Shown: positions 13,707 to 63,576 of the stretch, one piece after another
Numbering within the stretch: position 1 is the first letter of the stretch
How the letters are laid out: each line of letters begins with the position of its first letter
DNA from: Sphyrna mokarran
Lineage: Eukaryota
Direction: 5' to 3'
Length of the DNA stretch: 64,000 nt
NCBI GenBank assembly: GCA_024679065.1
Contig: JAGIQG010000023.1
Span: forward strand, 10,602,001 to 10,666,000
The notes under the pieces: generated by a model
The model's input: the letters and a program-made list of their open reading frames with translations, nothing else
The model's database searches: none
What the model was told of the DNA's origin: nothing
Program-made: the position numbers and the translations under genes

Positions 13707-13746
13707 ATGAGGTTCAGCGCGTTGCTGCTCCTCACTTCCATATCAA
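13707..13746 (+). CDS. Gene B exon 1: signal peptide [13 protein letters not shown] (phase 1)
   Basis: Kozak-like GGGACCATG, hydrophobic 13-codon run, donor A|GTAAGA; phase matches the first Ig exon (A+TT = Ile). Confidence 0.85.
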
Positions 13747-15900
13747 GTAAGATTTTTCAATTCTAAATTTAGAATGATAGTTCAGGCTTATGTAGAATCT
13801 GAGGAAAACGGCTCAAAGTTCTTTACACAGGACTAAAGAAACACAGACTCTGGGCCAAAGGAGAGCAGACTGAAAGGGTGAACCTAAAGTTCAGTCGAAG
13901 AGATGGGTTTTAAAGAGGCGGAGAGGGATTTAACGAGGAGGAGAGGTTTGACAACAGAGTTGCAAAATGTTGGATCTAATTGAAAACACAGCCATGAATG
14001 GTGGGGCACTTGATTTCAGAGGAATGGAAAGACTCCTCTGGGAGGGGGATAGTGGAATATCGGAGTACATTACAGGACTGTGAACAAATGAGTGCAATTT
14101 ACAAATTAATCTAGAAATCCACATGGCGCTCACTCCTGCCACCCAGAGATAGCGACAGGAAAAGAATCCATCATACCTTTCATGCCTGAAGTAAAGAAAG
14201 AGAGGAAGATGGGGAATAAGGACAGCCTAGATAGATCTCCCTGAGAGTTCTGCAGTTATAATAATGGGCAGTAGAGTTTCTTTCTGTGCTGTGAAATACG
14301 GGAGTGACAGTGTGGTTAGCACTGCTAGCTCACAGCGCCAGGCACTTGGGTTCAATTCACAGCTTGGGTCACTGTCTATGCAGAGTCTACACACTCTCCC
14401 CAGGTCTGTGGGTTTCCTCCGGATGCTCCGGTTTCCTCCCACAGTTCGAAAGATGTGCAGGTTAGATGCATTGGCCACGCTAAATTCTTCCTCGGTGCAT
14501 CCAAACAGGCATTTGAGTGTGTCGACTAGGGGATTTTCACAGTAACTTCATTTCAGTGTTAATGTCAGCCTACTTGTGAATTAATAAATAAACTTTGCTA
14601 CGTTGCCCACATGGAAATCAAATATTTCAGGATACAGATTAAACCCATTACTTCCTAAATGTCATGTCGAAGAAATTCTTGCCTGCGCCTTCAACTATTT
14701 TTCCTGCCATGCTATCTATTGAATAAGATAATACATTCTCATTTCTGACCAATTAACATCCCTTCATAATATAGATCAACTTTACATTTTAGATATTGCG
14801 TTTCTGCTTCAAATACGATTAAAGAAACACAGACAAAACTTCTGGGGTCTAAAGGAGCCTCTATATTCAGAGAGAATGTGGCTTCACATGACCCAGGTTT
14901 TTATCTTTATCAAGTATTTATTAGGCTGGGAAGGCGAATGAGATTACAGTCCTGGTGCTGAGATTCTATAATTGAGGCCATTTCCTTATTCACTCCTGCT
15001 CACGGTGACACAAAGGCAGAAAGGACGTTACTCAAAAAGCTGGATATATTGCTCCTCCTGGAAGTGTACAGGCTTCAAGTTGACTGGCTTGGCCTCACCT
15101 CAGTAACAGGATGAGGGGCTTACCTGCAGAATGTGCTTCTCTCTCTCAGTGAGTTGGTGTCACATTCCTGTACCCCACTCCCTACTGCAATGGCAGCTGG
15201 CCCAGAACACATCCAGTCACCAAATGCATCACAAAGATGGTCGCTGTCACGATTGGCTCAATCCTGAAGGGGCTGCTCCAAAGTATGTGTGTACTTGGAA
15301 TATTGTGTTCAATTCTGGTCATCTCACTACCAGAAGGATGTCGAGGCTTTGAAAAAGGTACAGAAAAGATTTACCAGGATGTTGCCTGGTATGGACGACA
15401 TTAGCTTGACTAGAGGTGGGAGAAACTTGTTTGTTGTCACTGTAGCGACAGAGGTTGAGGGTAGACCTATAAAGTCTAACCAGATTAAAGGACGCATGAA
15501 TTTTCCGTGATAATCATCAGCTTTTTCCTAGGATTGAAGAGAGTCAATTACTAGGGAGCATCAGTAAGGTGCGAGAGTAGTTTTTAAGAGATGTACAGCA
15601 GATTTTTAACCAATGGTGGTGGTGCCGTTGGACTCATTACAGGGACATGTGCGGAGCTGATATGGTCGTAGCTTTTAAGGTCATCTTCACAAGTACAGGA
15701 TAGGATGGGAATGAGAATAGTGATCCCCAAAGATAGGGGGTTTTAGGTTCAGGGTCGGGCAGTATGGTCAGTGCAGACTTAGATGCGGCCCGAGGCCTGA
15801 TCCTGTCTGTAATTTTTTTTTGTTCTTTGTTCTGTGTTTCACAGAACCCACACATTCACCACATATTGCACGCACGTACTCACAACCGAAAACATGCAAC

Positions 15901-15933
<33 letters not shown>

Positions 15934-18900
15934 TACATACCATTCACACACTATTCATATACACACACATGAACATACTTACCCACACACATAACACTCA
16001 GAACAGACAGACATGCATGCGCATAGACACACAACCACATACACACACACACATTCACCTACCCTCACACAAATACATGCACACACACTCATACACACAT
16101 ATATATACATACACATGCACACACACCCAAATAAAAATGTGAACACACATATATACACATTCTCACACAAACACACACATGCACACACACTCACACACAC
16201 ATCTACATAAATACATACACACACACCAGCACACACATTCNNNNNNNNNNNNNNNNNNNNNNNNNNNNNNNNNNNNNNNNNNNNNNNNNNNNNNNNNNNN
16301 NNNNNNNNNNNNNNNNNNNNNNNNNNNNNNNNNNNNNNNNNNNNNNNNNNNNNNNNNNNNNNNNNNNNNNNNNNNNNNATGGCATTCATGTACATGCACA
16401 CATACACGCACACATTCACATAAACACATGGGCGCACACACACAATCACACACACACAAACACATAAAAACACACACACATGCGCATACATACATACACA
16501 CACATGCATACAGACATACACACACACAAGCACACGTGCAAACACGTGCGCACACATGTGCAAGCACACACACATACAGATGCGCACATGCACATACACA
16601 CACAGACACTCATACGCATGCGTGCGCACACACACATACACACGTGCGCTCATATGCATGCGCACATGCAGACACACACATACTCACATAAACACACACA
16701 TGCATACACATGCATGCACGTACACACTGACACATATGAGCATACACACTCACATACACATGCACACACACATACATGCATACATGCACAGCATTCACAT
16801 ACACAAGCGCACACACACACATAACCACTCACACAAACTCACACACACTAATACACACACAAACAGATACACACAAACAGTCACATGCGTGCAAACACAC
16901 ATGCCTCTCTCGCTCCCATACAGACACACACAGTCTCACTCCCAAGGGCACACACCCTCTCAATCCCTCACACAGAAATGCAAGCACACTCTCTCATTCC
17001 CTTACACATAGGCCCTCACTTATTCTCAATCTCCTTCTCTCACACACACACACACATACACATACACACTCACACATTCTCCCTCTCTCTCTCTCTCTCT
17101 CCCTCTCACAAAAACACTATCCTTCTCTCACTCCCACACACACTCACTCACAGATACGGGGCTCTGCTCAACACAGTCTCATTCCTGAGCCTTGTGGCAA
17201 GTTCTCCTCCCCAGGACTTCCTCACCCTTGTCCCCAGGCCCAGTTTGGAGGTGCTGGAGTTGAATTCCATGCACTCTGACAGTAACACCCCACTGGTGGA
17301 AGGGCAGGTTGAGAGGCAGTTGTGGGACTCTTGGGATTTTAAATATGAATATTAATTATAAAAATGAGGAGTTACATTAAACCTTTACTGCTCACTTGTT
17401 AGGTCTCTGCTGGAGTATTGGGTACTCCAATAATGAGGATATAAAAAGGGGAGGCACAGCGGCACAATGATTAACACTGCTGCCTCACAGTGCCAGGGAC
17501 CTGGGTTTGATTCCTGGTTTGAGTCACTGTCTGTGTGGCATCTGCACGTTCTCCCTGTATCTACGTGGGTTTCCTCAAGGCGCTCCGTCCCACAGGCTGA
17601 AAATCTTTCTGGTTAGATGCATTCTCCCTCAGTATCCCTGAACAGGTTCCGTTGTGTGGCAACGAGGGTATTTTCACACCAACTTCATTGCAGTGTTCAT
17701 GTAAGTCTATTTGTGACTAATGAATAAACTTTACAATTCTGGGCACCACACTCGAGGAAGGAGGTTAAGGCCCTGGCAAGGGCACAGAGCAGATTTACCA
17801 GGATGGTGCCAGGGATTAGGGAATTTGGTTATGTGAACAGATTGGAGAAACTGGGATTCTTGTCCTTGGAAAAGAGCAGATTAAAGGGAAATCTAATCAA
17901 TATATTGAAAATGAGGAAGCGATTGGACATGTGTTTGGAGGGGACTAATGTGCATGGTTGTTAGGGAAGCTGGGCCTTGGGATTCAATTGACCAATAAAT
18001 TTCAATGAGCTGGCACAGACATGACAGGCTGAATGTCCTCCATCTCTGCTTTAAGATTCTTGATTCCAGTCCCACCCAGGACTTGTGTGTGTCCCCTTGT
18101 GAAGCACTGGCAGCATTGCACCAAAAGGATTGTCTACAATTGGGTGTTGGGATATTTCCAGCTTTCTTAAAACGTTATGTTTCACCAACAGTTTTACAGA
18201 CACAAACTGCCTCGATAGAGATGAAAGCTGCAGTGGGACAAACCATCACTGTGGAATGTCCAGGGGCAACACGGTACAAACACCGAGAAATCTGGTGGTG
18301 TAAGAGAACTTCAGCTAATTATTGCAATCTGATATTGAGCACTCATGGAGATAATATAAGGAATGATGGAAGAACATCGATCGTTAATACCAACGGTAAA
18401 ATTTCTGTAACCATAAAACAACTTCAGAAGACAGATACTGGAACATACTGGTGTGGAGTTCAAAATGAAAAAGATTTCAGTGTTTTAGATGTTATAACAC
18501 TGCAGGTTTTCTCAGGTAAGAATATTTCAGAAGATTGATTTTAGCTCTGATAATGTGACCCACTGCAATAACACAGGGCTGCTGCTGTGTGCTGTGTGAA
18601 CTCAGATTAATAAAATATCACAACTCCTCATGTACAAGTAGTGACTTCACATATTCCCATTTCTATCCATTTCCATTAACCTATTTCTGCATCCTTTCCA
18701 TCTATATTCTTACAAACCAAAAATCATATTCCACCCAAGGCTCTTTCATTGATTCTTTCATGCGATGAGAGTTTCTGGAACAGCAATTATTGAACATCCC
18801 TAATTATCCTGAATTGCCTTCTTGAATCACTACAGCTCATGAAGTGTACGTACACCCACAGTGATGTTAGGGAGGGAGTTCTGGGATTAAGCCAGTGACA

Positions 18901-21900
18901 GTGAAGGAACGGAGATAGATTCCCCAGTCTGGATGGTGTGTGTTTTGGAAGGAAGCTTGTCAGTGGTGATTGTCCCATGCACCCAATTCTCTCCTTCTAG
19001 GTGTTAGATGTCGCAGGTTTGGAAGGAGATTTAATTCATTGCTTTCTATCTCCATAGTAACTTGTAATAGATCGAGGGTGACTTAATGTGGCTTGAATCA
19101 ATAAATGTTTTATTGCCAACAATAGCCCATGCTTGCCTTCATCGGACTGGGTGTTGAGACGAAAAATTGGCAAATTATGTTACAGTTGTTTAAAACATTG
19201 GTTAGGCCACATTTTGAATATTGTGTCCAATTCTGGTTACCACACCATCAGAAGGATGTGGTGGCTTTGGAGAGAGTGCAGAAGAAGTTTACCAGCTTGT
19301 TGCCTGGTATGGAAGGTATTAGCGATGAGGAGAGATTGAATAAACTGGGATTGTTCTCACTGGAAATACACAGGCTGAGATGAACTAGTAGAAATTTATA
19401 AAATTATGACAGGTATAGATAAGAACATTTGGACTATTTCCCAGGGCAGAAAGGACAATTACAAGTGAGCACAAGTTCAAGGGGGGGAAGGTTCAGTGGA
19501 GATGTGCGGGGGAAGTTTTTTCACATTGGGGATGATGGGGGCCTGGAATACACTACCAAGTGAGATGATTGAGGCAATTACTTTAGTCGCATATAAGACG
19601 TATATCGATAGACACAGGAACAAACAGGGAATACAGGGTTATAAACGGTTGGTTTAGAGAGGCAAATATGAACAGCGCAGGCTTGGAGGGCCAAAGGGCC
19701 TGTTCATGTGCTTACCGTTCTTTGTTCTTTGTAATAAGAATATATATATCTATACAACAAGGTCAGAATGAATTACAATGTGAATCTACTATTCGGCTCC
19801 ATGGCTCCAACTGCAAAACATTCCTCAACCCGTGATGCACACCCTCTTGCCGATTGGCTCAGCTTCCAGCCTTGAGAATCCACAGGGCCTGACCTGACCA
19901 CATAACCCTCTAAACACTCCCCTACCCCAATTAAAGGACCACAATCCTTCCCCCTAAAATCTGAAATACAACAATGGAGGAATAAAGAACAGGAAAACTC
20001 AACAAAAATTTAAATCAGTCTGGAGGAATCCGGTCTCTGGTAGAGCTCCTCAATTCAGTGGTTTGCTCTCCTAAGCTTAAAGGGCCAGACGGGACAGACA
20101 AAAAGGCGGATTCATTAATCCAGGATCTGGTGGATCTTCAGCAGCTTCTGGTTCCTCAGTTTCCACAGCCAGCGGTTGCTGCGCTCCCACATTCTCCACC
20201 AAAATCTCAGTAACCAACCCCGGCAAAGTTTAACCAACTGCAGCGGGTGTCTGTTGATCCTCTGTGTCCATCACTCTCTTCTCCTTCAATGGTTTACCTG
20301 CTTCCTGAGCCGACAGCCTTGTATCTCCACAATGTCGGAGAACAGTCCTGTTCTCTTCATCAGCCACCCAGAACGGTATAAAATTTGGAAACAGGACTGC
20401 ATCCCCCACTTGAAATACAGTTTCCTTTTCTCGAATTACTGTTTTCCTTCTGAACGACTACCCAAGCCTGCATGCTCCCTGCTAAATTTGGGAATATCAT
20501 GTCCAATTGTGTTCTGAACTGGAATCCCATCTGCAACTCTGCTGGAGTCACCTCTGTGATCGTGTTTGGGGTACTGTTATAAGACAACAAAAAACTGTCC
20601 ATATATAAAGGAAGAGGATAATTTATTTGTTTTTTTATTGATGACTTGAATGTTTGTACCTCACGCTCCACTGGTCCATTTGAGGCTGAGTGGGAAGGTG
20701 TTGACCTCACATGGTGAATGCCATTAGGCTCCAGGAATTTTTGGAATTCTTCCACAGTGAATGGTGTGCCATTGTCCGACACAACCACTTCCGGAATGCC
20801 ATGGATAGCAGAGAATTTCCACACTCTATCAATTGTGCCCATGGTTGTTGGGGACTTCATCAACTGCACATCCAACCACAACTAATATAAGAAACATGTG
20901 ACCCCGAAATGGCCCGGGCAAAATCTACATTTAACTTCCACCAAGCTTGACCAGGCCATTCCCAATGATGCAAATTCACCTGTGATGGTAAAGCCCATTG
21001 ATCTTCGTAACTCGGGCATTGACGAACCATCTGTTCTGTTTCCTTGCCAATGCCTGGTGAAAACACATTTGCCTGGGGCCTTCATTCTACTTTGACCTGG
21101 AAAAGAGTGAGGCAGTTCTTGTAACAGGAATTAAAGATAAAGTCACAAGTAGGCTTACATTCACGCTGCAATGGAGTTACTATGAAAATCCCCTGGTTGC
21201 CACAATGCAGCACCTATTTGGGGACACAGAGAGAATTTAGCGTGGCCAATTCACCTAACCAGCACATCTTTGGAGTGTAGAAGGAAACCGGAGCACTTGG
21301 AGGAAACCCACACAGACACGGGAAGAACATGCAGACACGGCACAAACAGTGACCCAAGCTGGGAATCAAACCTTGATCCCTGACACTGTGACGCAGCAGT
21401 GCTAACCATTGTGCCACCGTACTTTCCTGGAGTCATCTCCCCAGGAGTGGTACAAGAAAGTCTAGCCACCTGCAGCGACACCCCATCTTCACAGGGTATC
21501 TCCATCCTTCTGCTTTGGTCGGGTTTGAGCTACTCTGACTTATATCACCATTTTTGCATTACCGTCTTCTTCACTTTTGACCACATCGGATCTATTTTTC
21601 TCCACAGTTTTATATGTTTTGCCAAGACTGGCAAGTTCCCTACCAGATACAGAGCCAGTATAATCTCTTGTGGAACCGGTGGTGGTGCGACTGTTTGCGG
21701 TAAAGACATCGGCTAATTGTGTCTGCTCGGGATATCTGCATTCCAGGGTGATGCTGAAACGTATAACTGTACGCTGCAAACAAAGGAGCCCATCTCTGCA
21801 TCCCTGCGGAGGCAATTAGAGGCACCGGCTTCTCTAAATAGACCTAACAATGGCTTCTCATCTGAAACTATTGTAAAATGTCACCCATAAATGATCACCT

Positions 21901-24900
21901 AGTTTTCCTCGTCTATTTGGGAGTATTCCGTTTCCACATTTGATCACGTCCCTCTCTCACATCCACACTCTCCCTCTCATTCTCTCTCCCTCTCACTCTC
22001 CTCCAAATCCTCTCTCTCCACACACTCTCTCCTCTTTCTCTCTCTCTCCTCTTTCTCTCTCTCTCACTCACTCTCTCCCTCATACACACTCTCTCTCACT
22101 CTCACACACACTCACTCACAGATACAGGGCTCTGCTCAATAGAGTCTCATTCCTGGGCCTTGTAGTCAGCTCTCTTCCCCAGGGCCTCCTCACACTTGTC
22201 CCCAGGGCCAGTTTGGAGACGCTAGAGTTGGGTTCCGATGCATTTTGACAGCAACACCACCCAGTGGAAGGATAGGTTGAGAGGCAGGGATTCTTGGGGA
22301 TGGCACGATGTCACAGTGGTTAGCACTGCTGTCTCACAGAACCAGGGACCTGTGTTCAATTCCTGGCTTGGGTCACTGTCTGTCTGGAGTCTGCACATTC
22401 TCCCCGTGTTTGCGTGGGTTTCCTCTGGGTGCTCCGGTTTGCTCCCACAGACTGAAAGGTGTGCTGCTTCAGTGTATTGGCCATCCTAAATTCTCCTGTG
22501 TACCTGAACAGGCGCTGGAGTGTGGCAACTAGGGGATTTCCACAGTAGCTTCAATGAGGTGTTAAGTTAAGCCTAATTCTGACAACATGATAAATAAATA
22601 AATAAATAAAATCGGAGTATTAATTAGAGATTTGAGGAGTTCCACTGAACTTTTACTAAGCACTGATTAGGTCTCTGCTGGAATACTGGGTTCAATCTGG
22701 GCACCACACTCGAGAAAGGAGGTTAAGGCCCTGCCAAGGGCACAGAGCAGATTCTCCAGGATGGTGCCAGGGATGAGGGAGTTTGGTTATGTGAACAGAT
22801 TGGAGAAACTGTGATTATTGTCCTTGGAACAGAGCAGATTAAGGGGAAATCTAATCGATGGATTGAAAATGAGGAAGAGATTTAAAAGACAGTTGGATAT
22901 GTGTTTGGAGGGGACCAACATGCAGGGTTGTGGGGGACGTTGGGCTGTGGGATTCAATTGGACAATAAATTTCAATGAGCTAGCACAGACATGACAGGCC
23001 AAATGTCCTCCATCTCTGCTTTAAGATTCTTGATTCCAGTCCCACCCAGGGCTTGTGTGTGTCCCCTTGTGAAGCACTGGCAGCATTGCACCAAAAGGAT
23101 TGTCTATAATTGGGTGTTGGGATATCTCCAGCTTTCTTAAAACATTATGTTTCACCAACAGTTTTACAGACACAAGCTGCCTCGATAGTGATGAAAGCTG
23201 CAGTGGGAGAAACCATCACTGTGGAATGTCCACAGACAACACAGTACCAATACCTTGAAATCTGGGGGTGTAAGCAAACTTCAGAAACTTATTGCAATCA
23301 TATATTGAGAACTTATGGAGTCAGAGTCAAGAATGTTGATGCAAGAACATCGATCGCTAATACCAACGATAAAATTTCCATAATCATACAACGACTTCAG
23401 GAGACAGATACAGGAACATACTGGTGTGGAGTTCGACATGAAAACTCTCTCCATGTTTTTGATGTTATAACACTGAAGGTTTTCTCAGGTAAGAATATTT
23501 CAGAAGATTGATTTTAGCTCTGATAATGTGATCCAGCTGCAATAACACAGGGCTGCTGCTGTGTGCTGTGTGAACTCAGATTAATAAAATATCACAACTT
23601 CTCATGTACAAGTAGTGACTTCCCATATTCCCATTTCTATCCATTTCCATTAACCTATTTGCAAATCCTTTCCGTTTATATTCTTACAAACCAAAAATCA
23701 TATTCCACCCAAGGCTCCTCTGTTGATTCTTTCATGTGATGTGAATGTCTGGAACAGCAATTACTGAACATCCCTAATTATCCTTGACCTGCCTTCTTGA
23801 ATCACTACAGCTCATGAAGTGTACGTACATCCACATTGCTGTTAGGGAGGGAGTTCCAGAATTGAACCAGTGTTAGTGAAGGAACGGCGATATATTCCCC
23901 AGTCTGGATGGTGTGTGTTTTGGAGGGAAGCGTGTCAGTGGTGGCGTTCCCATGCATCCGCTTCTCTCCTCCTCCTAATTCCTCTTCCTTTAATTCATTG
24001 CTTTCTATCTCCATAGTAACTTGAAATAGCTCAAGAGCCGCTCAATGTGGCTTGAATCAATAAAGGCTTTATTTCCGACAATATGGCATGCTTGCCTTCA
24101 TTAAACTGACTATCAAGTATTAAAGTTGGCAAATTATGTTACAGTTATATAAAATATTAGTTAGGCCACATTTAGAACGCTGTGTCCAATTTTGGTGACC
24201 ACAAAACCAGAAGGATGTGGAGACTATGGACAAAGTGTGGAAAAGGTTTACCAGGATGTTGCCGGGTATGGACGGTACTAGCTATGAGGAGAGATTGAAT
24301 AAACTGGGATTGTTCTCCCTGGAAAGATGGAGGCTGAGGGACGGCCTGGTAGAAGTTTATAAAATTATGAGCATATAGATCGGGTGAACAGTTGAAAGCT
24401 TTTTCCCAGGACAGAAAGGACAATTACAAGAGGGCACAAGTTCAAGATATGGGGGGAAAGGTTCAATGGAAATATGCAGGGGAAGTTTTTTATACAGGGG
24501 GTGGTGGAGATCTGCAATTCATTGTAAATGAGGTGGTTGAGGCACATTTAAGACTTATATTGATAAGCTTACGAACAAACAGGGAATAGAGGGAGAGAAG
24601 CAATGGGTCTAGATAGGTAAAGATGATTGGCAAAGGCATGGAAGGGCCGAAGGGCCTGTTCCTGTGCTGAACTGTTCTTTGTCCTTTATAATTAAGAAAT
24701 TATATACACACAACAGGGTCAGACTGAATTACATTGCAAATCTAACACTCAGCTCCCTGGCTCCAATTGCAAGACATTCTCAACCCCTGGTACCCTCTTA
24801 CCCATTTGTTCAGCTTCCAGTCTTGAGAATCCACACAGCCTGATACAATCACATGACCTCGTATACACTCTCCCACCCCAATTAAAGGGCCACAATCCTT

Positions 24901-27900: not shown

Positions 27901-28952
27901 TCTCTGCTTTAAGATTCTTGACTCCAGTCCCACCCAGAACTTGTGTGTGTTCCCTTGTGAAGCACTGGCAGCATTGCACCAAAAGGATTGTCTACAGTTG
28001 GGATAACTCCTGCTTTCTTAAAACGTTATGTTTCACCCACAGTTTTACGGACACAAACTGCCTCGATAGTGATGAAAGCTGCAGTGGGAGAAACCGTCAC
28101 TGTGGAATGTCCACAGGCAACACGGCACAAACAACGAGAAATCTGGTGGTGTAAGGAAACTTCAGATAATAATTGCAATCTGATATCGCGCACTCATGGA
28201 GATAGTATCAGAAATGATGATGGAAGAACATCGATTGTTAATACCGATGGCAAAATTTCTGTAAATATACTACAACTTAAGGAAACCGATACAGGAACAT
28301 ACTGGTGTGAACCTCCATATCAAAACACATCACAGATTTCAGATGTTATATTACTGAAGGTTTTCTCAGGTAAGAATCTTTCAGAAGATTGATTTTAGCT
28401 CTGATAATGTGATCTGGCTGCAATAACACAGGGCAGCTGCTGTGTGAACTCAAATTAATAAAATATCACAACTCCTCGTGCAAATAGTGACCTCCCATAT
28501 TCCCATTCCTATCCATTTCCATTAACCTATTTCTGTATCCTTTCCTTCTTTATTATCTTCCCTTTATACTCTTACAAAGCAAAAATCATATTTATCTAAA
28601 ACCTCTTTTATTCTTTCATTCATGGGATGTGCCTAAAAGACCTTTTATTACCCATCTCTAATTACCCTTCAGAAGGTTGTGGTGAACTGCCTTCTTCAAC
28701 TGCTGCAGCCCATGTGGTGTATGTACACCCACAGTGCTGTTAGAGAGGGAGTTCCAGGACTGAGCCAGTAACAGTGAAGGAACAGGGATAGATTCCCCAG
28801 TCTGGATGGTGTGTGTTTTGGAGGGAAGCTTGTCAGTGGTGATGTTCCCATACACCCACTTCTCTCCTCCTTCTAGATGCTAGATTTGGAAGGAGATTTA
28901 ATTCAAAGCTGCGTGTCTCGAACCAATAAAGGCTTTATTGCCAACAATACAG

Positions 28953-34794: not shown

Positions 34795-34862
34795 ACCATT
34801 ATTACTAGGCCAGTGTTAGAACAACAACTGCTGGAGTGAATTTTATGTTTGTTAATAGAAAG

Positions 34863-34868
34863 AATAAA
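34863..34868 (+). terminator. Candidate polyadenylation signal, gene B
   Basis: First AATAAA downstream of the predicted stop. Confidence 0.5.
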
Positions 34869-40800: not shown

Positions 40801-41149
40801 ATCTCACTTGCTCTATCGGACTCACCTTAGAAGCCATGCTTTTAACATGTAAGTGTAACCCACTTTCAGATGTCTTCCTCAGTTTTACAATTCCATACCC
40901 TATTGTTCTCTACTTTATTGAGCTAAATATCTGGTTGCCTTGCTGCTGAGCTAATTCATGTATCAAAACTTTCCAGACAACTACAATACCCTTTTACCCA
41001 ATTCTTTAAACGTTATTTTATCAGGATTTCTTGCATCATTATTTCATCCAATTCTTACATCTTTACTTTATTCAAGCTTAAGTTTCAAGTATTAAAAGTT
41101 TATTTGAAGTTTATTTATTAATGTCACAAGGAGGCTTAATTTAACACTG

Positions 41150-41448
41150 GAGAAAATACACAACTCTCTAACAATGCTCAGGATCCCCTTCACACACATT
41201 GTTAGCCACTTTAACACTTGAATAGCAGGTTAGATGTAAGGATTCGCATTCTAATCAGCAATCTCTGACTGTCTGTGCTGATGTGTGCTATTGCTGACCA
41301 GAACACTGCACTTGCCTGATGAAGACACGGGAGTGTTGAAAGCTCGCCATTTTACTATCAAATAAATCGGTTGGATTAATAATTGGTGTTGCTAAATTCT
41401 TACTGAGTTCTTACCACTCCAATCCAACGCCGGCATCTTTACATCATG
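41150..41448 (+). mobile_element. Penelope-like terminal-repeat fragment with hammerhead ribozyme core; present only in copy 2
   Basis: CTGATGA(41316)-A-GACAC-GGGA-GTGTT-GAAA(41341), then AATAAA and TCCAACGCCGGCATCTTTACATCA, the same terminus as the 6396 element. Confidence 0.65.
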
Positions 41449-43718: not shown

Positions 43719-43880
43719 ACACAAACCACGTTGTGAAAGAGTGTGGTTGGTCAACTTCTCTGATCCTTTGGTTTTGGGGAGGTAGTTCCACTGCTATCAG
43801 GAAGTAAATGATTCAGTGCAGATTCTTTGTCCGATTTAGAGACACTCGTGCCGAAAACCGTAGAAACTTTCGCCGGGACC
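43719..43880 (+). promoter_or_regulatory. Putative promoter of gene C
   Basis: Copy of 13545-13706. Confidence 0.55.
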
Positions 43881-43920
43881 ATGAGGTTCAGCGCGTTGCT
43901 GCTCCTCACTTCCATATCAA
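43881..43920 (+). CDS. Gene C exon 1: signal peptide [13 protein letters not shown]
   Basis: Identical to 13707-13746. Confidence 0.85.
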
Positions 43921-52900: not shown

Positions 52901-55900
52901 AATTGGGTGTTGGGATATTTCCAGCTTTCTTAAAATGTTATGTTTTACCAACAGTTTTACGGACACAAACTGCTACGATAGAGATGAAAGCTGCAGTGGG
53001 AGAAACCATCACTGTGGAATGTTCACAGACCACACAGCACAAACCCCGAGAAATCTGGGGGTGTAAGGAAACTTCAGAAACTTATTGCAATCATATATTC
53101 AGAATTTATGGAGACAGAGTCAAGAACGTTGATGCAAGAACATCGATCGTTAATACCTATGGTAAAATTTCCATAACCATAAAACAACTTCAGGAGACAG
53201 ATAAAGGAACATACTGGTGTGGAGATCGATATGAAAACTCTCTCCGTGTTTTAGATGCTGTAATACTGCAGGTTTTCCCAGGTAAGAATATTTCAGAAGA
53301 TTGATTTTAGCTCTGATAATGTGATCTGGCTGCAATAATACAGGACAGCTGCTGTGTGCTGTGTGAACTCAGATTAATAAAATATCACAATTCCTCATGT
53401 ACAAGTAGTGACTTCCCATATTCCCATTTCTATCCATTTCCATTAACCTATTTCTGCATCCTTTCTATCTATATTCTTACAAACCAAAAATTATATTCCA
53501 CCCAAGGCTCTTTTATTGATTCTTTCATGTGATGTGAGTTTCTGGAACAGCAATTATTGAACATCCTTAATTATCCTTGACCTGTCTTCTTCAAACACTG
53601 CAGCTCATGAAGTGTACGTACACCCACAGTGATGTTAGGGAGGGAGTTCCAGAATTGAACCAGTGTCAGTGAAGGAACAGTGATATATTCCCCAGTCTGG
53701 ATGGTGTGTGTTTTGGAAGGAAGCTTGTCAGTGGCGATTGTCCCATGCACCCACTTCTCTCCTCCTTCTAGGTGTTAGATGTTGCAGGTTTGGAAGGAGA
53801 TTTAATTCATTGCTTTCTATCTCCATAGTAACTTGTAATAGATCGAGGGCAAGTCAATGTGGCTTGAATCAATAAAGGCTTTATTTCCGACAATATGACA
53901 TACTTGCTTCATCGGACTGGGCATCGAATATTAAAGATGGCAAGTTATGTTACAGTTGTATAAAATATTGGTTAGGCCACATTTAGAACGCTGTGTCCAA
54001 TTCTGGTTACCACACCATCAGAAGGAAATGGATTCTTTGGAGAGAATGTGGAAAAGGTTTACCAAGATGTTGCCTGGTATGGAAGTTACTAGCTATGAGG
54101 AGAGATTGAATAAACTGGGATTGTTCTCCCTGGAAAGATGGAGGCTGAGAGACGACCTGGTAGAAGTTTATAAAATTATGAGCCGATAGATAGGGTAAAC
54201 AGTTGAAAGCTATTTCGCAGGACAGAAAGGACAATTACAAGGGGGCACAAGTTCAAGATATGGGGGGAAAGGTTCAGTGGAAATATGCAGGGGAAGTTTT
54301 TTATACAAAGGATGCTGGAGATCTGGAATGCACTGCCAATGAGGTGGTTGACGCACATTCAAGACTTATATCGATTAGCTTCGGAACAAACGGGGGAATA
54401 GAAGGAGAGGAGCAATGGGTTTAGATAGGTAAAGATGATTGGCAAAGACATGGAAGGCCAAAGGGCCTGTTCCTGTGCTGAACTGTTCTTTGGTCTTTAT
54501 AATTAAAAAAAACACAACAGGGTCAGACTGAATTACAATGCAAATCTAACATTCGGCTCCCTGGCTCCAATTGCAAGACATTCTCAACCCCTGGTACCCT
54601 CTTACCCATTTGCTCAAATTCCAGGCTTGAGAATCCACAGGGCCTGACACAATCACATGACCTCCTATACACTCTCCCACCCCAGTTAAAGGGCCACAAT
54701 CCTTCCCCCTAAATCTGAAGTACAATTACGGAGGAATAAAGAATAGAATTAGTGTTAAGGCAAAAAGAGTAAGAGAAATGGAAAACCCATTAAAGGTTTA
54801 ATCAGTCTGGAGGAATCCGGTCCCTGGTAGAGTGCCTCAGTTCAGGGGTTTGCTCTCCTAAGTTTAAAGGGCCAGAGAGGACAGATGAGAAAAGCAGATA
54901 CATTAATCCAGGATCTGGTGGATCTTCAGCAGCTTCTGGTTCCTCAGTTTCCACAGCCAGCGGTTGCTGTGCTCCCACGTTCTCCAGCAAAATCCCAGTA
55001 ACCAACCCCGGCAAAGTTCAACCAACTGCAGGGAGCGCCTGATGATCCTCTGTGTCCATCACTCTCTCCTCCTTCGATGGTCCACCTGCTTCCTGAGCCG
55101 ACAGCCTTGTATCTCCACAACTTTACCAGCCACTCAGGAACAGGCCTGGTGTTAATTTGGAAACAAGACTGCATCCCCGCTTAAAACACTCTGTTTCCTT
55201 TTCTCCTTCTGAAAGACTAGCCTAGCCTGCACACTCTCTGCAAAATTTCAGAATATCATATCCAGTTGTGTTTTTAACTGGCATCGCATCAGGAAATCCA
55301 CTAGAGTAAGCCCTGTGCTCACGCTTGGGATGGTGTTATAAGCTAACAAAAAACTGTCCATATGTAAAGGAAGAGGACAGTTTATTTGTTGTTTAATTGA
55401 TGGCTAACATACGAGGAGAGACTGTATAGGCTAGGTTTGTACTTTGGAGTTTAGAAGGCTGAGAGGGGATCTTATGGAGTTGTATAAGATAATGAAGGGA
55501 ATGGATAGGGTAGAGGTTGAGAGACACTTCCGGCTTAGCAAAGATAGCAGGACTAGAGAGCACAGCCTCAAGATTAAGGGGGTTGCAGTTCAGATCAGGG
55601 TTTCTTCAAGCACAGGGTGGTGAATCTTTGGAATTCTCTGCCTGATGAGGTGGTGGAGGCTTCCTCGCTGAATATATTCAAGTCAAGAGTGGATAGGTTT
55701 TTGATTGACAAGGGAACTAAAGGTTACGGGGAGAAAGCGGGAAAGTGGTACTGAACCACTACAGATCAGCCATGATTTAATTGAATGGCGGGGCAGGCTC
55801 GAGGGGCTGGATGGCCTATTCCTGCTCCTATTTCTTATGTTCTTATTCATATGTTTGTACCGCACGTTCCACCGGTCCATCTGAGGCTGGGTGGGAAGGT

Positions 55901-58900
55901 GTTGACCTCACATGGTGAATGCCATTAGGCTCCAGGAATTTTTGGAATTCTTCCACAGTGAATGGTGTGCCATTGTCCGACACAACCACTTCCGAATGCC
56001 ATGGATAGCAGAGAATTTCCACACTCTATCAATTGTGCCCATGGTTGTTGGGGACTTCATCAACTGCACATCCAACCACAACTAATATAAGAAACATGTG
56101 ACCCCGAAATGGCCCGGGCAAAATCTACATTTAACTTCCACCAAGCTTGACCAGGCCATTCCCAATGATGCAAATTCACCTGTGATGGTAAAGCCCATTG
56201 ATCTTCGTAACTCGGGCATTGACGAACCATCTGTTCTGTTTCCTTGCCAATGCCTGGTGAAAACACATATGCCTGGGGCCTTCATTCTACTTTGACCTGG
56301 AAAAGAGTGAGGCAGTTCTTGTAACAGGAATTAAAGATAAAGTCACACGTAGGCTTACATTCACGCTGCAATGGAGTTACTATGAAAATCCCCTGGTTGC
56401 CACAATGCAGCACCTATTTGGGGACACAGAGAGAATTTAGCGTGGCCAATTCACCTAACCAGCACATCTTTGGAGTGTAGAAGGAAACCGGAGCACTTGG
56501 AGGAAACCCACACAGACACGGGAAGAACATGCAGACACGGCACAAACAGTGACCCAAGCTGGGAATCAAACCTTGATCCCTGACACTGTGACGCAGCAGT
56601 GCTAACCATTGTGCCACCGTACTTTCCTGGAGTCATCTCCCCAGGAGTGGTACAAGAAAGTCTAGCCACCTGCAGCGACACCCCATCTTCACAGGGTATC
56701 TCCATCCTTCTGCTTTGGTCGGGTTTGAGCTACTCTGACTTATATCACCATTTTTGCATTACCGTCTTCTTCACTTTTGACCACATCGGATCTATTTTTC
56801 TCCACAGTTTTATATGTTTTGCCAAGACTGGCAAGTTCCCTACCAGATACAGAGCCAGTATAATCTCTTGTGGAACCGGTGGTGGTGCGACTGTTTGCGG
56901 TAAAGACATCGGCTAATTGTGTCTGCTCGGGATATCTGCATTCCAGGGTGATGCTGAAACGTATAACTGTACGCTGCAAACAAAGGAGCCCATCTCTGCA
57001 TCCCTGCGGAGGCAATTAGAGGCACCGGCTTCTCTAAATAGACCTAACAATGGCTTCTCATCTGAAACTATTGTAAAATGTCACCCATAAATGATCACCT
57101 AGTTTTCCTCGTCTATTTGGGAGTATTCCGTTTCCACATTTGATCACGTCCCTCTCTCACATCCACACTCTCCCTCTCATTCTCTCTCCCTCTCACTCTC
57201 CTCCAAATCCTCTCTCTCCACACACTCTCTCCTCTTTCTCTCTCTCTCCTCTTTCTCTCTCTCTCACTCACTCTCTCCCTCATACACACTCTCTCTCACT
57301 CCCACACACACTCACTCACAGATACAGGGCTCTGCTCAATAGAGTCTCATTCCTGGGCCTTGTAGTCAGCTCTCTTCCCCAGGGCCTCCTCACACTTGTC
57401 CCCAGGGCCAGTTTGGAGACGCTAGAGTTGGGTTCCGATGCATTTTGACAGCAACACCACCCAGTGGAAGGATAGGTTGAGATGCAGGGATTCTTGGGGA
57501 TGGCACGATGTCACAGTGGTTAGCGCTGCTGTCTCACAGAACCAGGGACCTGTGTTCAATTCCTGGCTTGGGTCACTGTCTGTCTGGAGTCTGCACATTC
57601 TCCCCATGTTTGCGTGGGTTTCCTCTGGGTGCTCCGGTTTGCTCCCACAGACTGAAAGGTGTGCTGCTTCAGTGTATTGGCCATCCTAAATTCTCCTCAG
57701 TGTACCTGAACAGGCGCTGGAGTGTGGCAACTAGGGGATTTCCACAGTAGCTTCAATGAGGTGTTAAGTTAAGCCTAATTCTGACAACATGATAAATAAA
57801 TAAATAAATAAAATCGGAGTATTAATTAGAGATTTGAGGAGTTCCACTGAACTTTTACTAATCACTGATTAGGTCTCTGCTGGAATACTGGGTTCAATCT
57901 GGGCACCACACTCGAGAAAGGAGGTTAAGGCCCTGCCAAGGGCACAGAGCAGATTCACCAGGATGGTGCCAGGGATGAGGGAGTTTGGTTATGTGAACAG
58001 ATTGGAGAAACTGTGATTATTGTCCTTGGAACAGAGCAGATTAAGGGGAAATCTAATCAATGGATTGAAAATGAGGAGAGATTTAAAAGACAGTTGGATA
58101 CGTGTTTGGAGGGGACCAACATGCAGGGTTGTGGGGGACGTTGGGCTGTGGGATTCAATTGGACAATAAATTTCAATGAGCTAGCACAGACATGACAGGC
58201 CAAATGTCCTCCATCTCTGCTTTAAGATTCTTGATTCCAGTCCCACCCAGGGCTTGTGTGTGTCCCCTTGTGAAGCACTGGCAGCATTGCACCAAAAGGA
58301 TTGTCTATAATTGGGTGTTGGGATATCTCCAGCTTTCTTAAAACATTATGTTTCACCAACAGTTTTACAGACACAAGCTGCCTCGATAGTGATGAAAGCT
58401 GCAGTGGGAGAAACCATCACTGTGGAATGTCCACAGACAACACAGTACCAATACCTTGAAATCTGGGGGTGTAAGCAAACTTCAGAAACTTATTGCAATC
58501 GTATATTGAGAACTTATGGAGTCAGAGTCAAGAATGTTGATGCAAGAACATCGATCGCTAATACCAACGATAAAATTTCCATAATCATACAACGACTTCA
58601 GGAGACAGATACAGGAACATACTGGTGTGGAGTTCGACATGAAAACTCTCTCCGTGTTTTAGATGTTATAACACTGAAGGTTTTCTCAGGTAAGAATATT
58701 TCAGAAGATTGATTTTAGCTCTGATAATGTGATCCAGCTGCAATAACACAGGGCTGCTGCTGTGTGCTGTGTGAACTCAGATTAATAAAATATCACAACT
58801 TCTCATGTACAAGTAGTGACTTCCCATATTCCCATTTCTATCCATTTCCATTAACCTATTTGCAAATCCTTTCCGTTTATATTCTTACAAACCAAAAATC

Positions 58901-61900
58901 ATATTCCACCCAAGGCTCCTCTGTTGATTCTTTCATGTGATGTGAATGTCTGGAACAGCAATTACTGAACATCCCTAATTATCCTTGACCTGCCTTCTTG
59001 AATCACTACAGCTCATGAAGTGTACGTACATCCACATTGCTGTTAGGGAGGGAGTTCCAGAATTGAACCAGTGTTAGTGAAGGAACAGCGATATATTCCC
59101 CAGTCTGGATGGTGTGTGTTTTGGAGGGAAGCGTGTCAGTGGTGGCGTTCCCATGCATCCGCTTCTCTCCTCCTCCTAATTCCTCTTCCTTTAATTCATT
59201 GCTTTCTATCTCCATAGTAACTTGAAATAGCTCAAGAGCCACTCAATGTGGCTTGAATCAATAAAGGGGCTTTATTTCCGACAATATGGCATGCTTGCCT
59301 TCATTAAACTGACTATCAAGTATTAAAGTTGGCAAATTATGTTACAGTTGTATAAAATATTAGTTAGGCCACATTTAGAACGCTGTGTCCAATTTTGGTG
59401 ACCACAAAACCAGAAGGATGTGGAGACTATGGACAAAGTGTGGAAAAGGTTTACCAGGATGTTGCCGGGTATGGACGGTACTAGCTATGAGGAGAGATTG
59501 AATAAACTGGGATTGTTCTCCCTGGAAAGATGGAGGCTGAGGGACGACCTGGTAGAAGTTTATAAAATTATGAGCGTATAGATCGGGTGAACAGTTGAAA
59601 GCTATTTCCCAGGACAGAAAGGACAATTACAAGAGGGCACAAGTTCAAGATATGGGGGGAAAGGTTCAATGGAAATATGCAGGGGAAGTTTTTTATACAG
59701 GGGGTGGTGGAGATCTGCAATTCATTGTAAATGAGGTGGTTGAGGCACATTTAAGACTTATATTGATAAGCTTACGAACAAACAGGGAATAGAGGGAGAG
59801 AAGCAATGGGTCTAGATAGGTAAAGATGATTGGCAAAGGCATGGAAGGGCCGAAGGGCCTGTTCCTGTGCTGAACTGTTCTTTGTCCTTTATAATTAAGA
59901 AATTATATACACACAACAGGGTCAGACTGAATTACATTGCAAATCTAACACTCAGCTCCCTGGCTCCAATTGCAAGACATTCTCAACCCCTGGTACCCTC
60001 TTACCCATTTGTTCAGCTTCCAGTCTTGAGAATCCACACAGCCTGATACAATCACATGACCTCGTATACACTCTCCCACCCCAATTAAAGGGCCACAATC
60101 CTTCCCCCTAAATCTGAAGTACAATTACGGAGGAATAAAGAACAGAATTAGTGTTTTAACTGAAAAGAGTAAGAGAAATGGAAAGCCCATTAAAGGTTTA
60201 ATCAGTCTGGAGGAATCCGGTCCCTGGTAGAGCGCCTCAGTTCAGGGGTTTGCTCTGTTAAGTTTAAAGGACCAGACAGGATAGACGAGAAAGGCAGACT
60301 CAATAATCCAGGATCTGGTGGATCTTTAGCAGCTTCTGGTTCCTCAGTCTCCACAGCCACGTGCTGCGCTCCCACGTTCTCCAGCAAAATCCCAGTAACC
60401 AACTCCGGCAAAGTTCAACCAACTGCAGGGAGCGCCTGATGATCCTCTGTGTCCATCACTCTCTCCTCCTTCGATGGTCCACCTGCTTCCTGAGCCGACA
60501 GCCTTGTATCTCCACAACTTTACCAGCCACTCAGGAACAGGCCTGGTGTTAATTTGGAAACAAGACTGCATCCCCGCTTAAAACGCTCTGTTTCCTTTTC
60601 TCCTTCTGAAAGACTAGCCTAGCCTGCACACTCTCTGCAAAATTTCGGAATATCATATCCAGTTGTGTTCTTAACTGGCATCGCATCAGCATCTCCACTG
60701 GAATAACCCCTGTGCTCACGTTTGGGGTGATGTTATAAGACAACAAAAAACTGTCCATACGTAAAGGTAGAGGACAGTTTATTTGTTTTTTCATTGATGG
60801 CTAGCATGTTTGTACCACACACTCTACTGGTTCATCTGAGGCTGGGTGGGAAGGTGTTGACCTCACATCAACATTAGGCTCCAGGAACTTTTGGAATTCT
60901 TCCACAGTGAATGATGTCCCTTTGTCTGACACAACCACTTCCAGAATGCCATGGACAGCAGAGAATTTCCACACTCTATCAATGGTGCCCATGGTTGTTG
61001 GGGACTTCATCAACTGCACATCCAACCACAACTAATATAAGAAACATATGACCCAGAAATGGCCCGGGCAAAATCTACATTTAACTTCCACCAAGGTTGA
61101 CCAGGCCATTCCCAATGATGCAAATTCACCTGTGATGGTAAAACCCATTGATCTTCGTAACTCGGGCATTGATGAACCATCCGTTCTATTTCTTTGCCAA
61201 TGCCTGGTGAAAACACATATGCCTGGGGCCCTCATTCTACTTTGACCTGGATGAGAGTGGTGTAGTCCTTCTAACAGGAATTAAAGTTAAAGTCACAAGT
61301 AGTTACATTCACACTGCAGTGGAGTTACTATGAAAATCCTCTAATTGCCACAATCCAGCGCCTGTTTGGGTACACTGAGAGACAATTTAGCGTGGCCAAT
61401 TCACCTAACCAGCACATCTTTGGAGTGTAGAAGGAAACCGGAGCGCCTGGAGGAAACCCACACAGACACGGGAAGAACATGCAGACATGACACAGACCGG
61501 GAATCGAACCCTGGTCTCTGACACTGTGACGTAGCAGTGCTAACCATTGTGCCACCATACCTTCCTGGAGTCATCTCCCCAGGAGTGGTGCAAGAAATTC
61601 TAGCCACCTGCAGCAACACCCCATCTTCACAGGGTATCTCCATCCTTCTACTTTGGTAGGGTTTGAGCTCCTCTGACTTATATCACCACTTTTGCGTTAC
61701 CGTCTTCTTCACTTTTGACCACACCGGATCTATTTTTCTCTACTGTTTTATATGTTTTGCTAAGACTGGCAAGGACTCTACCAGATGCAGATATTAATCT
61801 CTTGTAGAACCGGTGGTGCGACTGTTTGTGGCAATGACAACGGCTAATTGCGTCTGCTCGGGATATCTGCATTCCAGGGTGATGCTGAAACGTATAACTG

Positions 61901-63576
61901 TACGCTGCAAACAAAGGAGTCCATCTCTGCATCCCTGCGGAGGCAATTAGTGGCACCGGATTCTCCAAATAGCCTTAACAATGGCTTCTCATCTGAAACT
62001 ATTGTAAAATGTCACCCATAAATGATCACCTAGTTTTCCTCATCTATCTGGTAGTATTCCGTTTCCACATTTGATCATGTCCCTCTCTCACACACACTTT
62101 CCGTCTCCCTCTCTCTCCCTCTCACTCTCCTCCAAATCCTCTCCCTCCACATACAATGCACACACACTCTCTCTCTTTCTCTCTCTCTCACTCACTCTCT
62201 CCCTCATACACACTCTCTCTCACTCCCACACTCACTCACTCACAGATACAGGGCTCTGCTCAACACAGTCTCATTCCTGGGCCTGGAGCAGCTCTACACC
62301 GCAGGCTCTCCTCTCATGCTTGTCCCCAGGCCCAGTTTGGAGATGCTGGAGTTGGGTTCCGATGCACTCTGACAGCAAAACCCCACTGGTAGAAGGGCAG
62401 GTTGAGAGGCAGTTGTGGGATTCTTGGGGATGGCACAATGTCACAGTGTTAGTGCTGCTGTCTCACAGCACCAGAGACCTGGGTTGAATTCCTGGCTTGA
62501 GTCACTCTCTGTGTGGAGTCTGCACATTCTCCCTGTATCTGTGTGGGTTTCCTCTGGGTGCTCTGGTTTCCTCCCACAGACTGAAAGACATGCTGGTTCA
62601 ATGCATTGGCCATCCTAAATTCTCCCTCAGTGTACCTGAACAGGCGCTGGAATGTGACGACTACGGGATTTCCACATTAGCTTCATTGCGATGTTAATGT
62701 AAGCCCACTTCTGACAGTAAGATAAATAAATAAATAAAATTGGAGTATTAATTAGAGAGATTTGGTCTCTGCTGGAGTACTGGGTTCAATTCTGATCATC
62801 ACACTCAAGGAAGGAGGTTAAGGCTTTGGCAAGGGCACAGAGCAGATTTACCAGGATGGTGCTTGTAATGGGGGATTTTGGGTATGTGGACAGATTGGAG
62901 AAACTGTGATTATTGGGCTTGGAACAGAACAGATTAAAGGGAAATCTAATTGATGAATTGAAACTGAGGAAGGGATTTAAAAGGCAGTTGGATATGTGTT
63001 TGGAGGGGACTAATGTGCAAGTTTGTGGGGGAAGTTGGGCTGTGGGATTCAATTGGACAATAAATTTCAATGAGCTAGCACAGACACGACAGGCTGAATG
63101 TCCTCCATCTCTGCTTTAAGATTCTTGACTCCAGTCCCACCCAGAACTTGTGTGTGTTCCCTTGTGAAGCACTGGCAGCATTGCACCAAAAGGATTGTCT
63201 ACAGTTGGGATAACTCCTGCTTTCTTAAAACGTTATGTTTCACCCACAGTTTTACGGACACAAACTGCCTCGATAGTGATGAAAGCTGCAGTGGGAGAAA
63301 CCGTCACTGTGGAATGTCCACAGGCAACACGGCACAAACAACGAGAAATCTGGTGGTGTAAGGAAACTTCAGATAATAATTGCAATCTGATATCGTGCAC
63401 TCATGGAGATCGCATCAGAAATGATGATGGAAGAACATCGATTGTTAATACCGATGGCAAAATTTCTGTAAATATACTACAACTTAAGGAAACCGATACA
63501 GGAACATACTGGTGTGAACCTCCATATCAAAACACATCACAGATTTCAGATGTTATATTACTGAAGGTTTTCTCAG
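43881..63576 (+). CDS. Gene C (5' part; continues beyond window): paralogous receptor, leader + at least 4 distal V-Ig exons
   Basis: Exons 43881-43920, 48358-48681, 52955-53281, 58363-58689 and 63250-63576; all open and phase 1-1. Confidence 0.85.
46025..47320. repeat. Degenerate (CA)n/(CT)n microsatellite tract containing a 138-N gap (46409-46546)
   Basis: Direct inspection. Confidence 0.97.
48358..48681 (+). CDS. Gene C Ig exon D1
   Basis: Protein identical to gene B D1; same splice sites. Confidence 0.92.
49253..51590 (-). mobile_element. Gypsy remnant, cassette copy with internal deletion near 50963
   Basis: Homologous LTR and integrase; RNase H motif [18 protein letters not shown] (ORF 51365..51550). 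Confidence 0.88.
52955..53281 (+). CDS. Gene C extra Ig exon D1b (no counterpart in gene B)
   Basis: Open 327-nt exon TITVECSQ...[11 protein letters not shown]...[18 protein letters not shown]; ccaacag| and CCAG|GTAAGA. Confidence 0.92.
53858..57135 (-). mobile_element. Gypsy remnant, cassette copy with an extra CR1 insertion
   Basis: LTR 53858-54698 and integrase fragments. Confidence 0.88.
55412..55847 (+). mobile_element. CR1 LINE 3' fragment unique to the D1b cassette
   Basis: [10 protein letters not shown]...[20 protein letters not shown]; TTCTTATG tail; flanked by CATA on both sides. Confidence 0.9.
58363..58689 (+). CDS. Gene C Ig exon D2
   Basis: Three amino-acid differences from gene B D2. 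Confidence 0.92.
59247..62070 (-). mobile_element. Gypsy remnant, cassette copy
   Basis: LTR 59247-60097 and integrase fragments. Confidence 0.88.
63250..63576 (+). CDS. Gene C Ig exon D3
   Basis: Two amino-acid differences from gene B D3 (R>C, S>R). Confidence 0.9.

Follow-up and report, generated by a model that had tools for sequence, protein, structure and literature searches.

A 64,000-nt stretch of the genome of the shark Sphyrna mokarran (assembly GCA_024679065.1, contig JAGIQG010000023.1, forward-strand positions 10,602,001 to 10,666,000), hereafter referred to as the window, was analyzed for a tandem family of genes whose predicted products resemble the CD300, TREM, and pIgR receptors. 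Three gene units, named A, B, and C, were found, which recur with a period of approximately 30-35 kb and are about 99% alike. Both the units and the shorter repeats within them were compared by self-BLAST of the entire window, and the unit structure is described as assembled. Gene B followed the order of a leader exon, four immunoglobulin (Ig) exons of the variable (V) type (D1, D2, D3, and D4), a stalk exon of 34 nt, and a transmembrane exon bearing an arginine. The order in gene C, up to the end of the window, was leader, D1, D1b, D2, and D3. Gene A, whose V exons lie outside the window, lacks D4. Coordinates of all features are listed in Table 1.

Eight V-type exons were identified, all of them on the plus strand. 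Every one of the eight was open, had a length of 324 or 327 nt, was preceded by AG, and was of phase 1 at both ends. The donor was GT in seven exons and GC in B_D4. Because all V exons are of phase 1-1, any copy number of them reads through in frame. Within each unit, a shorter tandem repeat of approximately 4.6-5.4 kb was observed, where the copies are 81-90% alike and each holds one open Ig V-domain reading frame. The starts of the D1-type exons (D1, D1b, D2, and D3) were spaced by 4970 and 4881 nt in gene B, and by 4597, 5408, and 4887 nt in gene C. An initial annotation of the window had described adjacent paralogs that differ in domain content (four domains in B, the additional D1b in C, and no D4 in A), symmetric phase 1-1 Ig exons, and exon cassettes of about 5 kb; all three descriptions agree with the exons and repeats located here, and its limits (13707 and 63576) coincide with the start codon in the gene B leader exon and the final base of C_D3.

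Between genes B and C, the D1 exons were identical, and the D2 exons differed at three nucleotides, all of which are amino-acid changing. The D3 exons also differed at three nucleotides, of which two are amino-acid changing, one of them adding an extra cysteine in C_D3. At the D4 donor of gene B, the exon ends in AAAG and the intron begins with GCAAGG, and in the remnant of gene A this place (2368) is occupied by GT. Past its GC donor, the D4 frame of gene B remains open for a further 53 codons and reaches a perfect GTAAGT at 32398, again in phase 1, which could serve as an alternative splice donor.

The exons outside the V domains were located with a protein of Mustelus asterias (XP_078054025.1, here P0001), a sequence of 390 residues annotated by NCBI as "polymeric immunoglobulin receptor-like". 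A tblastn search with P0001 found all of its parts in order, including the leader, the D1-type exons (64-70% identity), D4 (75%), the stalk, and the transmembrane segment (86%). The match of the stalk, at 33591-33632, was weak but exact in phase, with agreement at 10 of the 14 aligned positions. The hydropathy of the transmembrane exon peaked at 1.72 (Kyte-Doolittle, 19 residues), and this span includes the arginine. Both mini-exons and both transmembrane exons, those of genes A and B, were open with intact splice sites.

Table 1. Positions of exons, recombination-related features, sequence gaps, and self-BLAST unit matches in the window.
Feature	Position	Strand	Remarks
Gene B leader exon, coding part	13707-13746	+	ATG at 13707; 13 codons and 1 base; GT donor, phase 1; P0001 tblastn match 13707-13745; 10/13 residues match P0001 leader
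B_D1 V-set exon	18192-18515	+	324 nt, phase 1-1
B_D2 V-set exon	23162-23488	+	327 nt, phase 1-1
B_D3 V-set exon	28043-28369	+	327 nt, phase 1-1
B_D4 V-set exon, membrane-proximal type	31912-32238	+	327 nt, phase 1-1; GC donor; 75% identical to P0001 D4
Gene B stalk mini-exon	33598-33631	+	34 nt; AG/GT flanks; phase 1 in, phase 2 out; joins D4 to transmembrane exon
Gene B transmembrane exon with Arg	34543-34649	+	phase 2 in, phase 1 out; P0001 tblastn match 34541-34648, 86%
Gene C leader exon, coding part	43881-43920	+	P0001 tblastn match 43881-43919
C_D1 exon	48358-48681	+	coding sequence identical to B_D1
C_D1b exon	52955-53281	+	inside extra gene C cassette
C_D2 exon	58363-58689	+	read from splice flanks
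C_D3 exon	63250-63576	+	last base at 63576; remainder of gene C past window end
Gene A D4 remnant	2338-2367	+	last 30 nt, then GT donor; self-BLAST break 2334/2338 versus 31579/32209
Gene A stalk mini-exon	3719-3752	+	34 nt; identical to gene B copy; AG/GT flanks; phase 1 in, phase 2 out
Gene A transmembrane exon with Arg	4665-4771	+	P0001 tblastn match 4663-4770, 86% over 36 residues, E 2e-15
Crossover interval, 36 bp	20690-20725 (gene B)	+	identical in all three aligned sequences
Dead retrotransposon integrase fragment	20360-20881	-	Pfam rve, E 3e-06, 27.9 bits, below 32.6 cut-off
N run, intron 1 of gene B	16241-16378	.	138 N, in CA-rich tract
N run, intron 1 of gene C	46409-46546	.	138 N, in CA-rich tract
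Unit match	2338-11269 vs 32209-41149		99.2%, self-BLAST
Unit match	11274-16240 vs 41449-46408		97.8%, self-BLAST
Unit match	16379-20798 vs 46547-50964		99.6%, self-BLAST
Unit match	20650-28791 vs 55851-64000		99.1%, self-BLAST
Unit match (D3-D4 intron)	598-2334 vs 29833-31579		93.2% only, self-BLAST

Domain identity and the family in sharks and rays

Each exon was searched and folded singly, rather than as part of a joined spliced model. The Pfam V-set cut-off (26 bits) was passed by all five translations tested, with scores of 39.1-53.5 bits. The motifs C-x7-C and D-x-G-x-Y-W-C, the latter in the F strand, occurred in the translations of all eight V exons, and the C-x7-C cysteines, which follow the tryptophan of the C strand, aligned with cysteines of pIgR D1 and D5 in HMMER. 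In sequence searches of the PDB, the highest whole-protein scores of B_D1 and B_D4 were to pIgR (5e-35, summed over five domains, and 1.6e-28, respectively), and their best single-domain matches were to CD300 proteins (CMRF35-H at 1.8e-12 and CLM-6 at 3.9e-11). Further matches of B_D1 included CLM-6, CLM-1, NKp44 (5e-08), TREM2 (1.4e-05), and the IgM Fc receptor. D1 was also modelled with AlphaFold2 from a 19-row alignment, and the resulting model had a predicted local distance difference test (pLDDT) score of 89.1 and contained eight strands and one short helix. The top Foldseek matches of this model were TREM2, CD300c, CD300lf, TREM-1, TLT-1, NKp44, and pIgR D1, with TM-scores of 0.7-0.83, and of 0.74-0.83 for the first three.

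On every feature examined, the V domains of the window belong to the CD300/TREM/pIgR group. The two motifs had been taken as marks of this group in the initial annotation, and the Pfam, PDB, and Foldseek matches concur. A rearranging antigen-receptor V segment was also considered and was rejected, as the V exons are ordinary internal phase 1-1 exons that are flanked on either side by splice sites.

A search with D1 over 1.84 billion representative sequences returned 1356 matches at E <=0.001, the best of which was P0001 (1.3e-92). The nearest proteins were all from elasmobranchs, starting with Mustelus and followed by catsharks and lamniform sharks. When P0001 was used as the query, 54 proteins were found at E <=1e-20, of which the first 17 belong to sharks and rays and most of the others are bird PIGR models. 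Cutting of domains by BLAST showed an architecture of one D1-type and one D4-type domain in 15 of the 17 elasmobranch proteins, and two D1-type domains followed by D4 in the other two, both from Mustelus. A second set of 16 proteins was found with the sawfish ortholog P0021, and 14 of them were cut into domains: ten had the D1+D4 architecture, one had only D1, two isoforms from Narcine had five domains without the D4 type, and the protein of the stingray Hemitrygon akajei (P0202, 479 residues) had a partial third D1-type domain besides two near-identical ones, all before its D4. NCBI annotations of the family exist for over a dozen elasmobranchs. These counts suggest that the family is ancestrally one of two Ig domains, namely a membrane-distal D1-type and a membrane-proximal D4-type domain.

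The Hemitrygon protein P0202 appeared to reflect an independent and very recent multiplication of the D1-type exon. The isoforms of the electric ray Narcine bancroftii (P0003 and P0152, 561-662 residues) showed an alternating arrangement of five D1-like V domains without a D4 type and appeared to represent a different multi-domain branch of the superfamily.

Both activating-type and inhibitory forms were present among the relatives. The former, represented by Mustelus P0001 and Scyliorhinus P0155, carry an arginine in the transmembrane segment, which is conserved with the arginine of the window exons, and end 6-8 residues past the transmembrane exon. The latter, represented by P0153, P0158, P0160, P0020, and P0021, carry an ordinary transmembrane segment and a tail that resembles an immunoreceptor tyrosine-based inhibitory motif (ITIM). 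The transmembrane exons of the window were all of the activating type; no inhibitory-type transmembrane or tail exon was found in the window, where the tails of P0153 and P0158 yielded no tblastn match with an E below about 0.5. Judging from these forms, the proteins named pIgR-like by NCBI in sharks and rays are probably a CD300-type family of paired activating and inhibitory receptors with a ground plan of two domains. A true pIgR, the transcytosis receptor, was rejected as an identity for the window genes, since their orthologs have a charged transmembrane segment and a tail of only 6-8 residues.

The residues predicted at the exon junctions of the window also matched those of P0001. The codon divided between the leader and D1 (A and TT) encodes isoleucine, and the corresponding codons at the ends of the D1-type exons (G and TT), D4 (G and GA), and the mini-exon (AG and A) encode valine, glycine, and arginine, respectively. 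The same junctions as predicted for the window exons were observed in annotated proteins of Mustelus and Scyliorhinus. This match of split codons to Mustelus is the strongest available support for the predicted splicing pattern. The cassettes could instead be alternative exons, with transcripts taking one or some of the D1-type exons so that the receptors would keep about two Ig domains. The acceptors and donors are near-identical and every subset of the phase 1-1 exons is in frame, isoforms are annotated in the family (Mustelus X1 and X2, which differ by the transmembrane segment), and the ancestral state has one D1-type domain. However, D1-type domains stand in series in Hemitrygon P0202 and in Mustelus P0001, P0153, and P0154, each of which holds both of its D1-type domains, and no sequence mark of a mutually exclusive mechanism was observed at the window exons. 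We thus consider this use of the cassettes quite unlikely, and the inclusion of the D1-type exons in series is preferred.

A maximum-likelihood tree of domains was constructed from 31 rows, in which the seven D1-type exons of the window were combined with D1-type domains taken from 17 proteins, while five D4 domains served as the outgroup. The rows included 29 different sequences, as B_D1 is identical to C_D1 and two rows of S. torazame are identical to each other. In this tree, D1b joined D2 (support 95/93), each gene B copy paired with its gene C copy, and three of the four Mustelus domains grouped weakly (86/93).

Changes in domain number

Genes B and C differed by an extra cassette of 4.9 kb (50964-55851), which is found only in gene C and holds D1b; on either side of this cassette, the two genes are about 99% alike. 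In a three-way alignment, gene B was equal to cassette 1 of gene C up to column 205 and to cassette 1b of gene C from column 242, which leaves a crossover interval of 36 bp. This interval falls inside the remnant of a retrotransposon integrase. The D1b exon was about 11-19% divergent from all other exons, with an identity of 89% to D2 and 84% to D1. Because it has diverged from every other exon, D1b is old, and gene B therefore lost D1b rather than gene C having gained it. Such a loss is best explained by unequal crossing-over between cassettes.

A second change was observed in gene A, where 629 bp corresponding to 31580-32208 of gene B are deleted. The deletion removed the acceptor of D4 and all of the exon but its last 30 nt. 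As the D3 exon and the mini-exon are both of phase 1, the loss of D4 would stay in frame in gene A, whose V exons lie beyond the window. The adjoining stretch of the D3-D4 intron, with a similarity of only 93.2% between the units, marks a boundary that belongs either to the recent duplication event or to a conversion tract.

The high similarity of the units raised the question of whether they are separate genes. Genes B and C, and perhaps A, could instead be a single gene whose two haplotypes were placed side by side during assembly, or a repeat that was over-expanded there, in which case the difference of three versus four cassettes would be allelic or artefactual. Identity between the units amounts to 97.8-99.6% over about 26 kb, and a run of 138 N occurs at the same relative place in both, with identical flanks. 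In contrast, the window contains at least three units, with a similarity of 99.2% between B and the 3' half of A, and of 99.1-99.6% between C and the 5' half of B. One segment is only 93.2% identical, and the units also differ by the deletion of 629 bp, by an indel of roughly 300 bp near 41149-41449, and by the whole 4.9 kb cassette. A divergence of 0.4-2.2% is also high for two alleles, and a difference in cassette number between haplotypes would still be real variation. Overall, a haplotype or assembly origin appeared unlikely, and the units are treated below as tandem paralogs.

Divergence of the V exons and interpretation of the locus

Among the four types of D1-type exon, the pairwise ratios of nonsynonymous to synonymous divergence (dN/dS) ranged from 0.81 to 1.93, values which rest on approximately 70 synonymous sites and are by themselves indistinguishable from neutral drift. 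The exons were also compared to their flanks within a shared core of 1.35 kb. The divergence of the exon exceeded that of the flank in all six D1-type pairs, with ratios of 1.25-2.34, and four of the six comparisons were below 0.05 in Fisher tests (p values of 7e-06, 0.018, 0.18, 0.11, 0.0018, and 0.024). Exons had at most one indel, of 3 nt, and flanks of about 450-520 bp a side had 2-8 each. On the strands predicted by the structural model, 35 of 54 columns outside strands were variable vs. 21 of 54 inside (p=0.012). A by-eye division into loop and framework (30 of 37 vs. 26 of 71, p=1.4e-5) was rejected in favor of the model strands, as it partly mislabelled strand residues. When 50 random substitutions, corresponding to the observed level of change, were introduced, only 1.5% of 20,000 trials gave an open exon that retained every cysteine.

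The comparison of exons to flanks, the distribution over strands, and the random-substitution counts argue for function. Decay of a duplicated receptor into pseudogenes would agree with dN/dS values near or above 1, the absence from gene A of an otherwise universal D4, the GC donor at D4 of gene B, a last exon that was not found in the window, and the odd cysteine in C_D3. However, eight of eight V exons, two of two mini-exons, and two of two transmembrane exons are open, with intact splice sites; the random substitutions seldom left such an exon; the exons hold a single indel of 3 nt where indels are frequent in the flanks; and the changes avoid the strands. Pseudogenes are therefore a very improbable explanation. 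For functional genes, the faster divergence of exons than of flanks points to selection driven by ligands, possibly as diversifying selection on the loops of the V domains. If the selection is ligand-driven, the genes may be regarded as candidate sensors of pathogens or lipids in cartilaginous fish.

The observed exon anatomy, homology, crossover, and faster exon than flank divergence are probably best accounted for by three tandem paralogs in which D1-type cassettes are gained and lost in frame by unequal recombination, and which encode a multi-V surface receptor. In this lineage, a block made up of one D1-type exon and some 4.5 kb of the intron that follows it, where pieces of dead transposons lie, would have been copied in tandem, giving rise to the three D1-type exons of gene B and the four of gene C. 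Unequal homologous recombination between the intronic repeats would then alter the copy number. All cassettes may be spliced into one mRNA, which is predicted to encode a type I receptor of the cell surface that carries a stack of 3-5 V domains. Signaling would potentially proceed through an adaptor chain paired to the arginine of the transmembrane segment.

Several observations, in addition to the small number of synonymous sites, weigh against this interpretation. Since the units are 99% alike, part of the copy structure could be a product of assembly, and the link from the leader to D1 crosses a run of N in both B and C. Gene A has lost D4, and the donor of D4 in gene B is GC, which could weaken the inclusion of D4; GC splice donors are rare. 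An arginine-to-cysteine change gives C_D3 an odd cysteine. For the terminal coding exon, which comprises six residues in Mustelus, no credible candidate emerged in the window from a pattern scan or from BLOSUM scoring of the six C-terminal residues of P0001 and P0155; the best score, 14, fell just upstream of the next leader. Additionally, 11 of the 26 inner branches of the domain tree are open, and the copies could predate or postdate the split from Mustelus.

The array could further be a selected device for diversity, in which intronic transposon remnants act as handles for recombination, the V exons are driven apart, and D4 is dropped or weakened. We regard this broader view as possible but doubtful. 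If it were true, and if the number of cassettes were polymorphic or variably spliced, the locus would exemplify a germline diversification by "length plus loop" in an activating receptor of sharks. It would also represent an independent replay of the domain accretion behind the multi-domain pIgR.

At the level of the family, multiplication of the distal exon was not confined to the window, as it was also observed in Mustelus (two copies) and Hemitrygon (at least two). The distal V exon has thus been multiplied in at least three elasmobranch lineages, where the domain tree is compatible with either a shared or an independent origin in Mustelus and the shark of the window. The initial annotation had proposed an accordion-like, germline-diversified innate receptor system that varies in gene copy number and ectodomain length. 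The accordion picture agrees with these relatives at the family level; while everything stated there on the sequence itself held, the interpretation as a whole was supported only in part.

Related receptor systems and remaining features of the window

The closest known counterparts of the window genes are Mustelus P0001 and its inhibitory partner (P0153 and P0154), which likewise consist of a 13-residue leader, D1-type V domains, a D4-type V domain, and a short stalk, with an arginine-bearing transmembrane exon in P0001. Unlike Mustelus, with two D1-type domains, and most relatives in sharks and rays, with one, the window genes have three or four, and gene A is without D4. The likeness to mammalian CD300, TREM, and NKp44 lies in the type of V domain with the additional C-x7-C, and that to CD300 also in the pairing of activating forms (charged transmembrane segment and short tail) with inhibitory forms (ITIM). 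Only one V domain is present in receptors of the CD300 and TREM families, in contrast to the 3-5 V domains of the window genes.

Several CD300-type V domains in series are a feature shared with the pIgR of tetrapods and teleosts and with the pIgR-like (PIGRL) genes of teleosts. Differences from pIgR include the arginine in the transmembrane segment of the window genes and, in their orthologs, a tail of 6-8 residues in place of a long sorting tail. In addition, the added domains of the window are recent copies of the distal domain and not old, distinct D2-D4 domains. In teleosts, the pigr gene is described as a two-domain gene with Cx7C motifs in a preprint (bioRxiv 10.1101/2022.04.21.489081), and the elasmobranch family, as an ancestrally two-domain family with such motifs, resembles it in this respect. 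The same preprint describes the zebrafish NILT cluster, which includes many combinations of Ig domains and haplotypes of differing gene content. Similar to the window family, the NILTs form a germline, non-rearranging cluster with Cx(n)C V domains in varied combinations. They differ in that they belong to teleosts and are deemed lineage-specific by the authors of the preprint, whereas the window varies one repeated cassette inside each gene.

[quoted passage not shown] (2006, Immunogenetics 58:362) and gives GenBank accessions for MDIR2, MDIR3, and MDIR4, as multigene families with activating and inhibitory members and CD300/TREM/pIgR-like domains. By description only, the window family resembles the skate MDIRs as a multigene family of cartilaginous fish with CD300/TREM/pIgR-like V domains and both signaling forms, the latter observed in the Mustelus and Scyliorhinus relatives. 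No protein named MDIR was present among the 54 matches of P0001 or the 16 matches of P0021. The number of domains in skate MDIRs reportedly varies among types, in a description based on cDNA. To our knowledge, a genomic cassette layout and a mapped crossover are not part of the MDIR description. No paper on the shark family of the window or on its cassette layout was found in the literature searched, which lay outside supplements and most subscription papers.

The locus thus provides a base-level example of how the number of Ig domains can change, with symmetric exons, a repeated block of intron, and one loss pinned to 36 bp. It does not establish a new category, as variable domain number is already known in such families, including the teleost NILTs and, reportedly, the MDIRs. 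Two features are worth recording, namely the highest D1-type copy number encountered in this analysis and a crossover mapped to 36 bp.

An indel of approximately 300 bp was present at 41149-41449 in the second unit without a counterpart in the first (break 11269/11274), although the two are otherwise 98-99% identical, and may represent a short interspersed element. Open reading frames at 5237-5512 (minus strand), 35115-35390 (minus strand), 45463-45759 (plus strand), and 36714-38113 were isolated or repeated between units and had no Pfam match. In the 9 kb from the transmembrane exon to the next leader, these Pfam-negative frames resembled debris of interspersed repeats.

The two N runs lie approximately 2.5 kb past the leader and 1.8 kb before D1, touch neither an exon nor a reading frame, and have flanks that match at 120 of 120 bases on each side between the copies. 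Each is enclosed by a degenerate microsatellite tract that spans roughly 1.3 kb (15850-17200 and 46000-47400) and in which C and A make up 70-84% of the bases. This tract yields many spurious open reading frames that are rich in histidine and threonine or in cysteine and valine.

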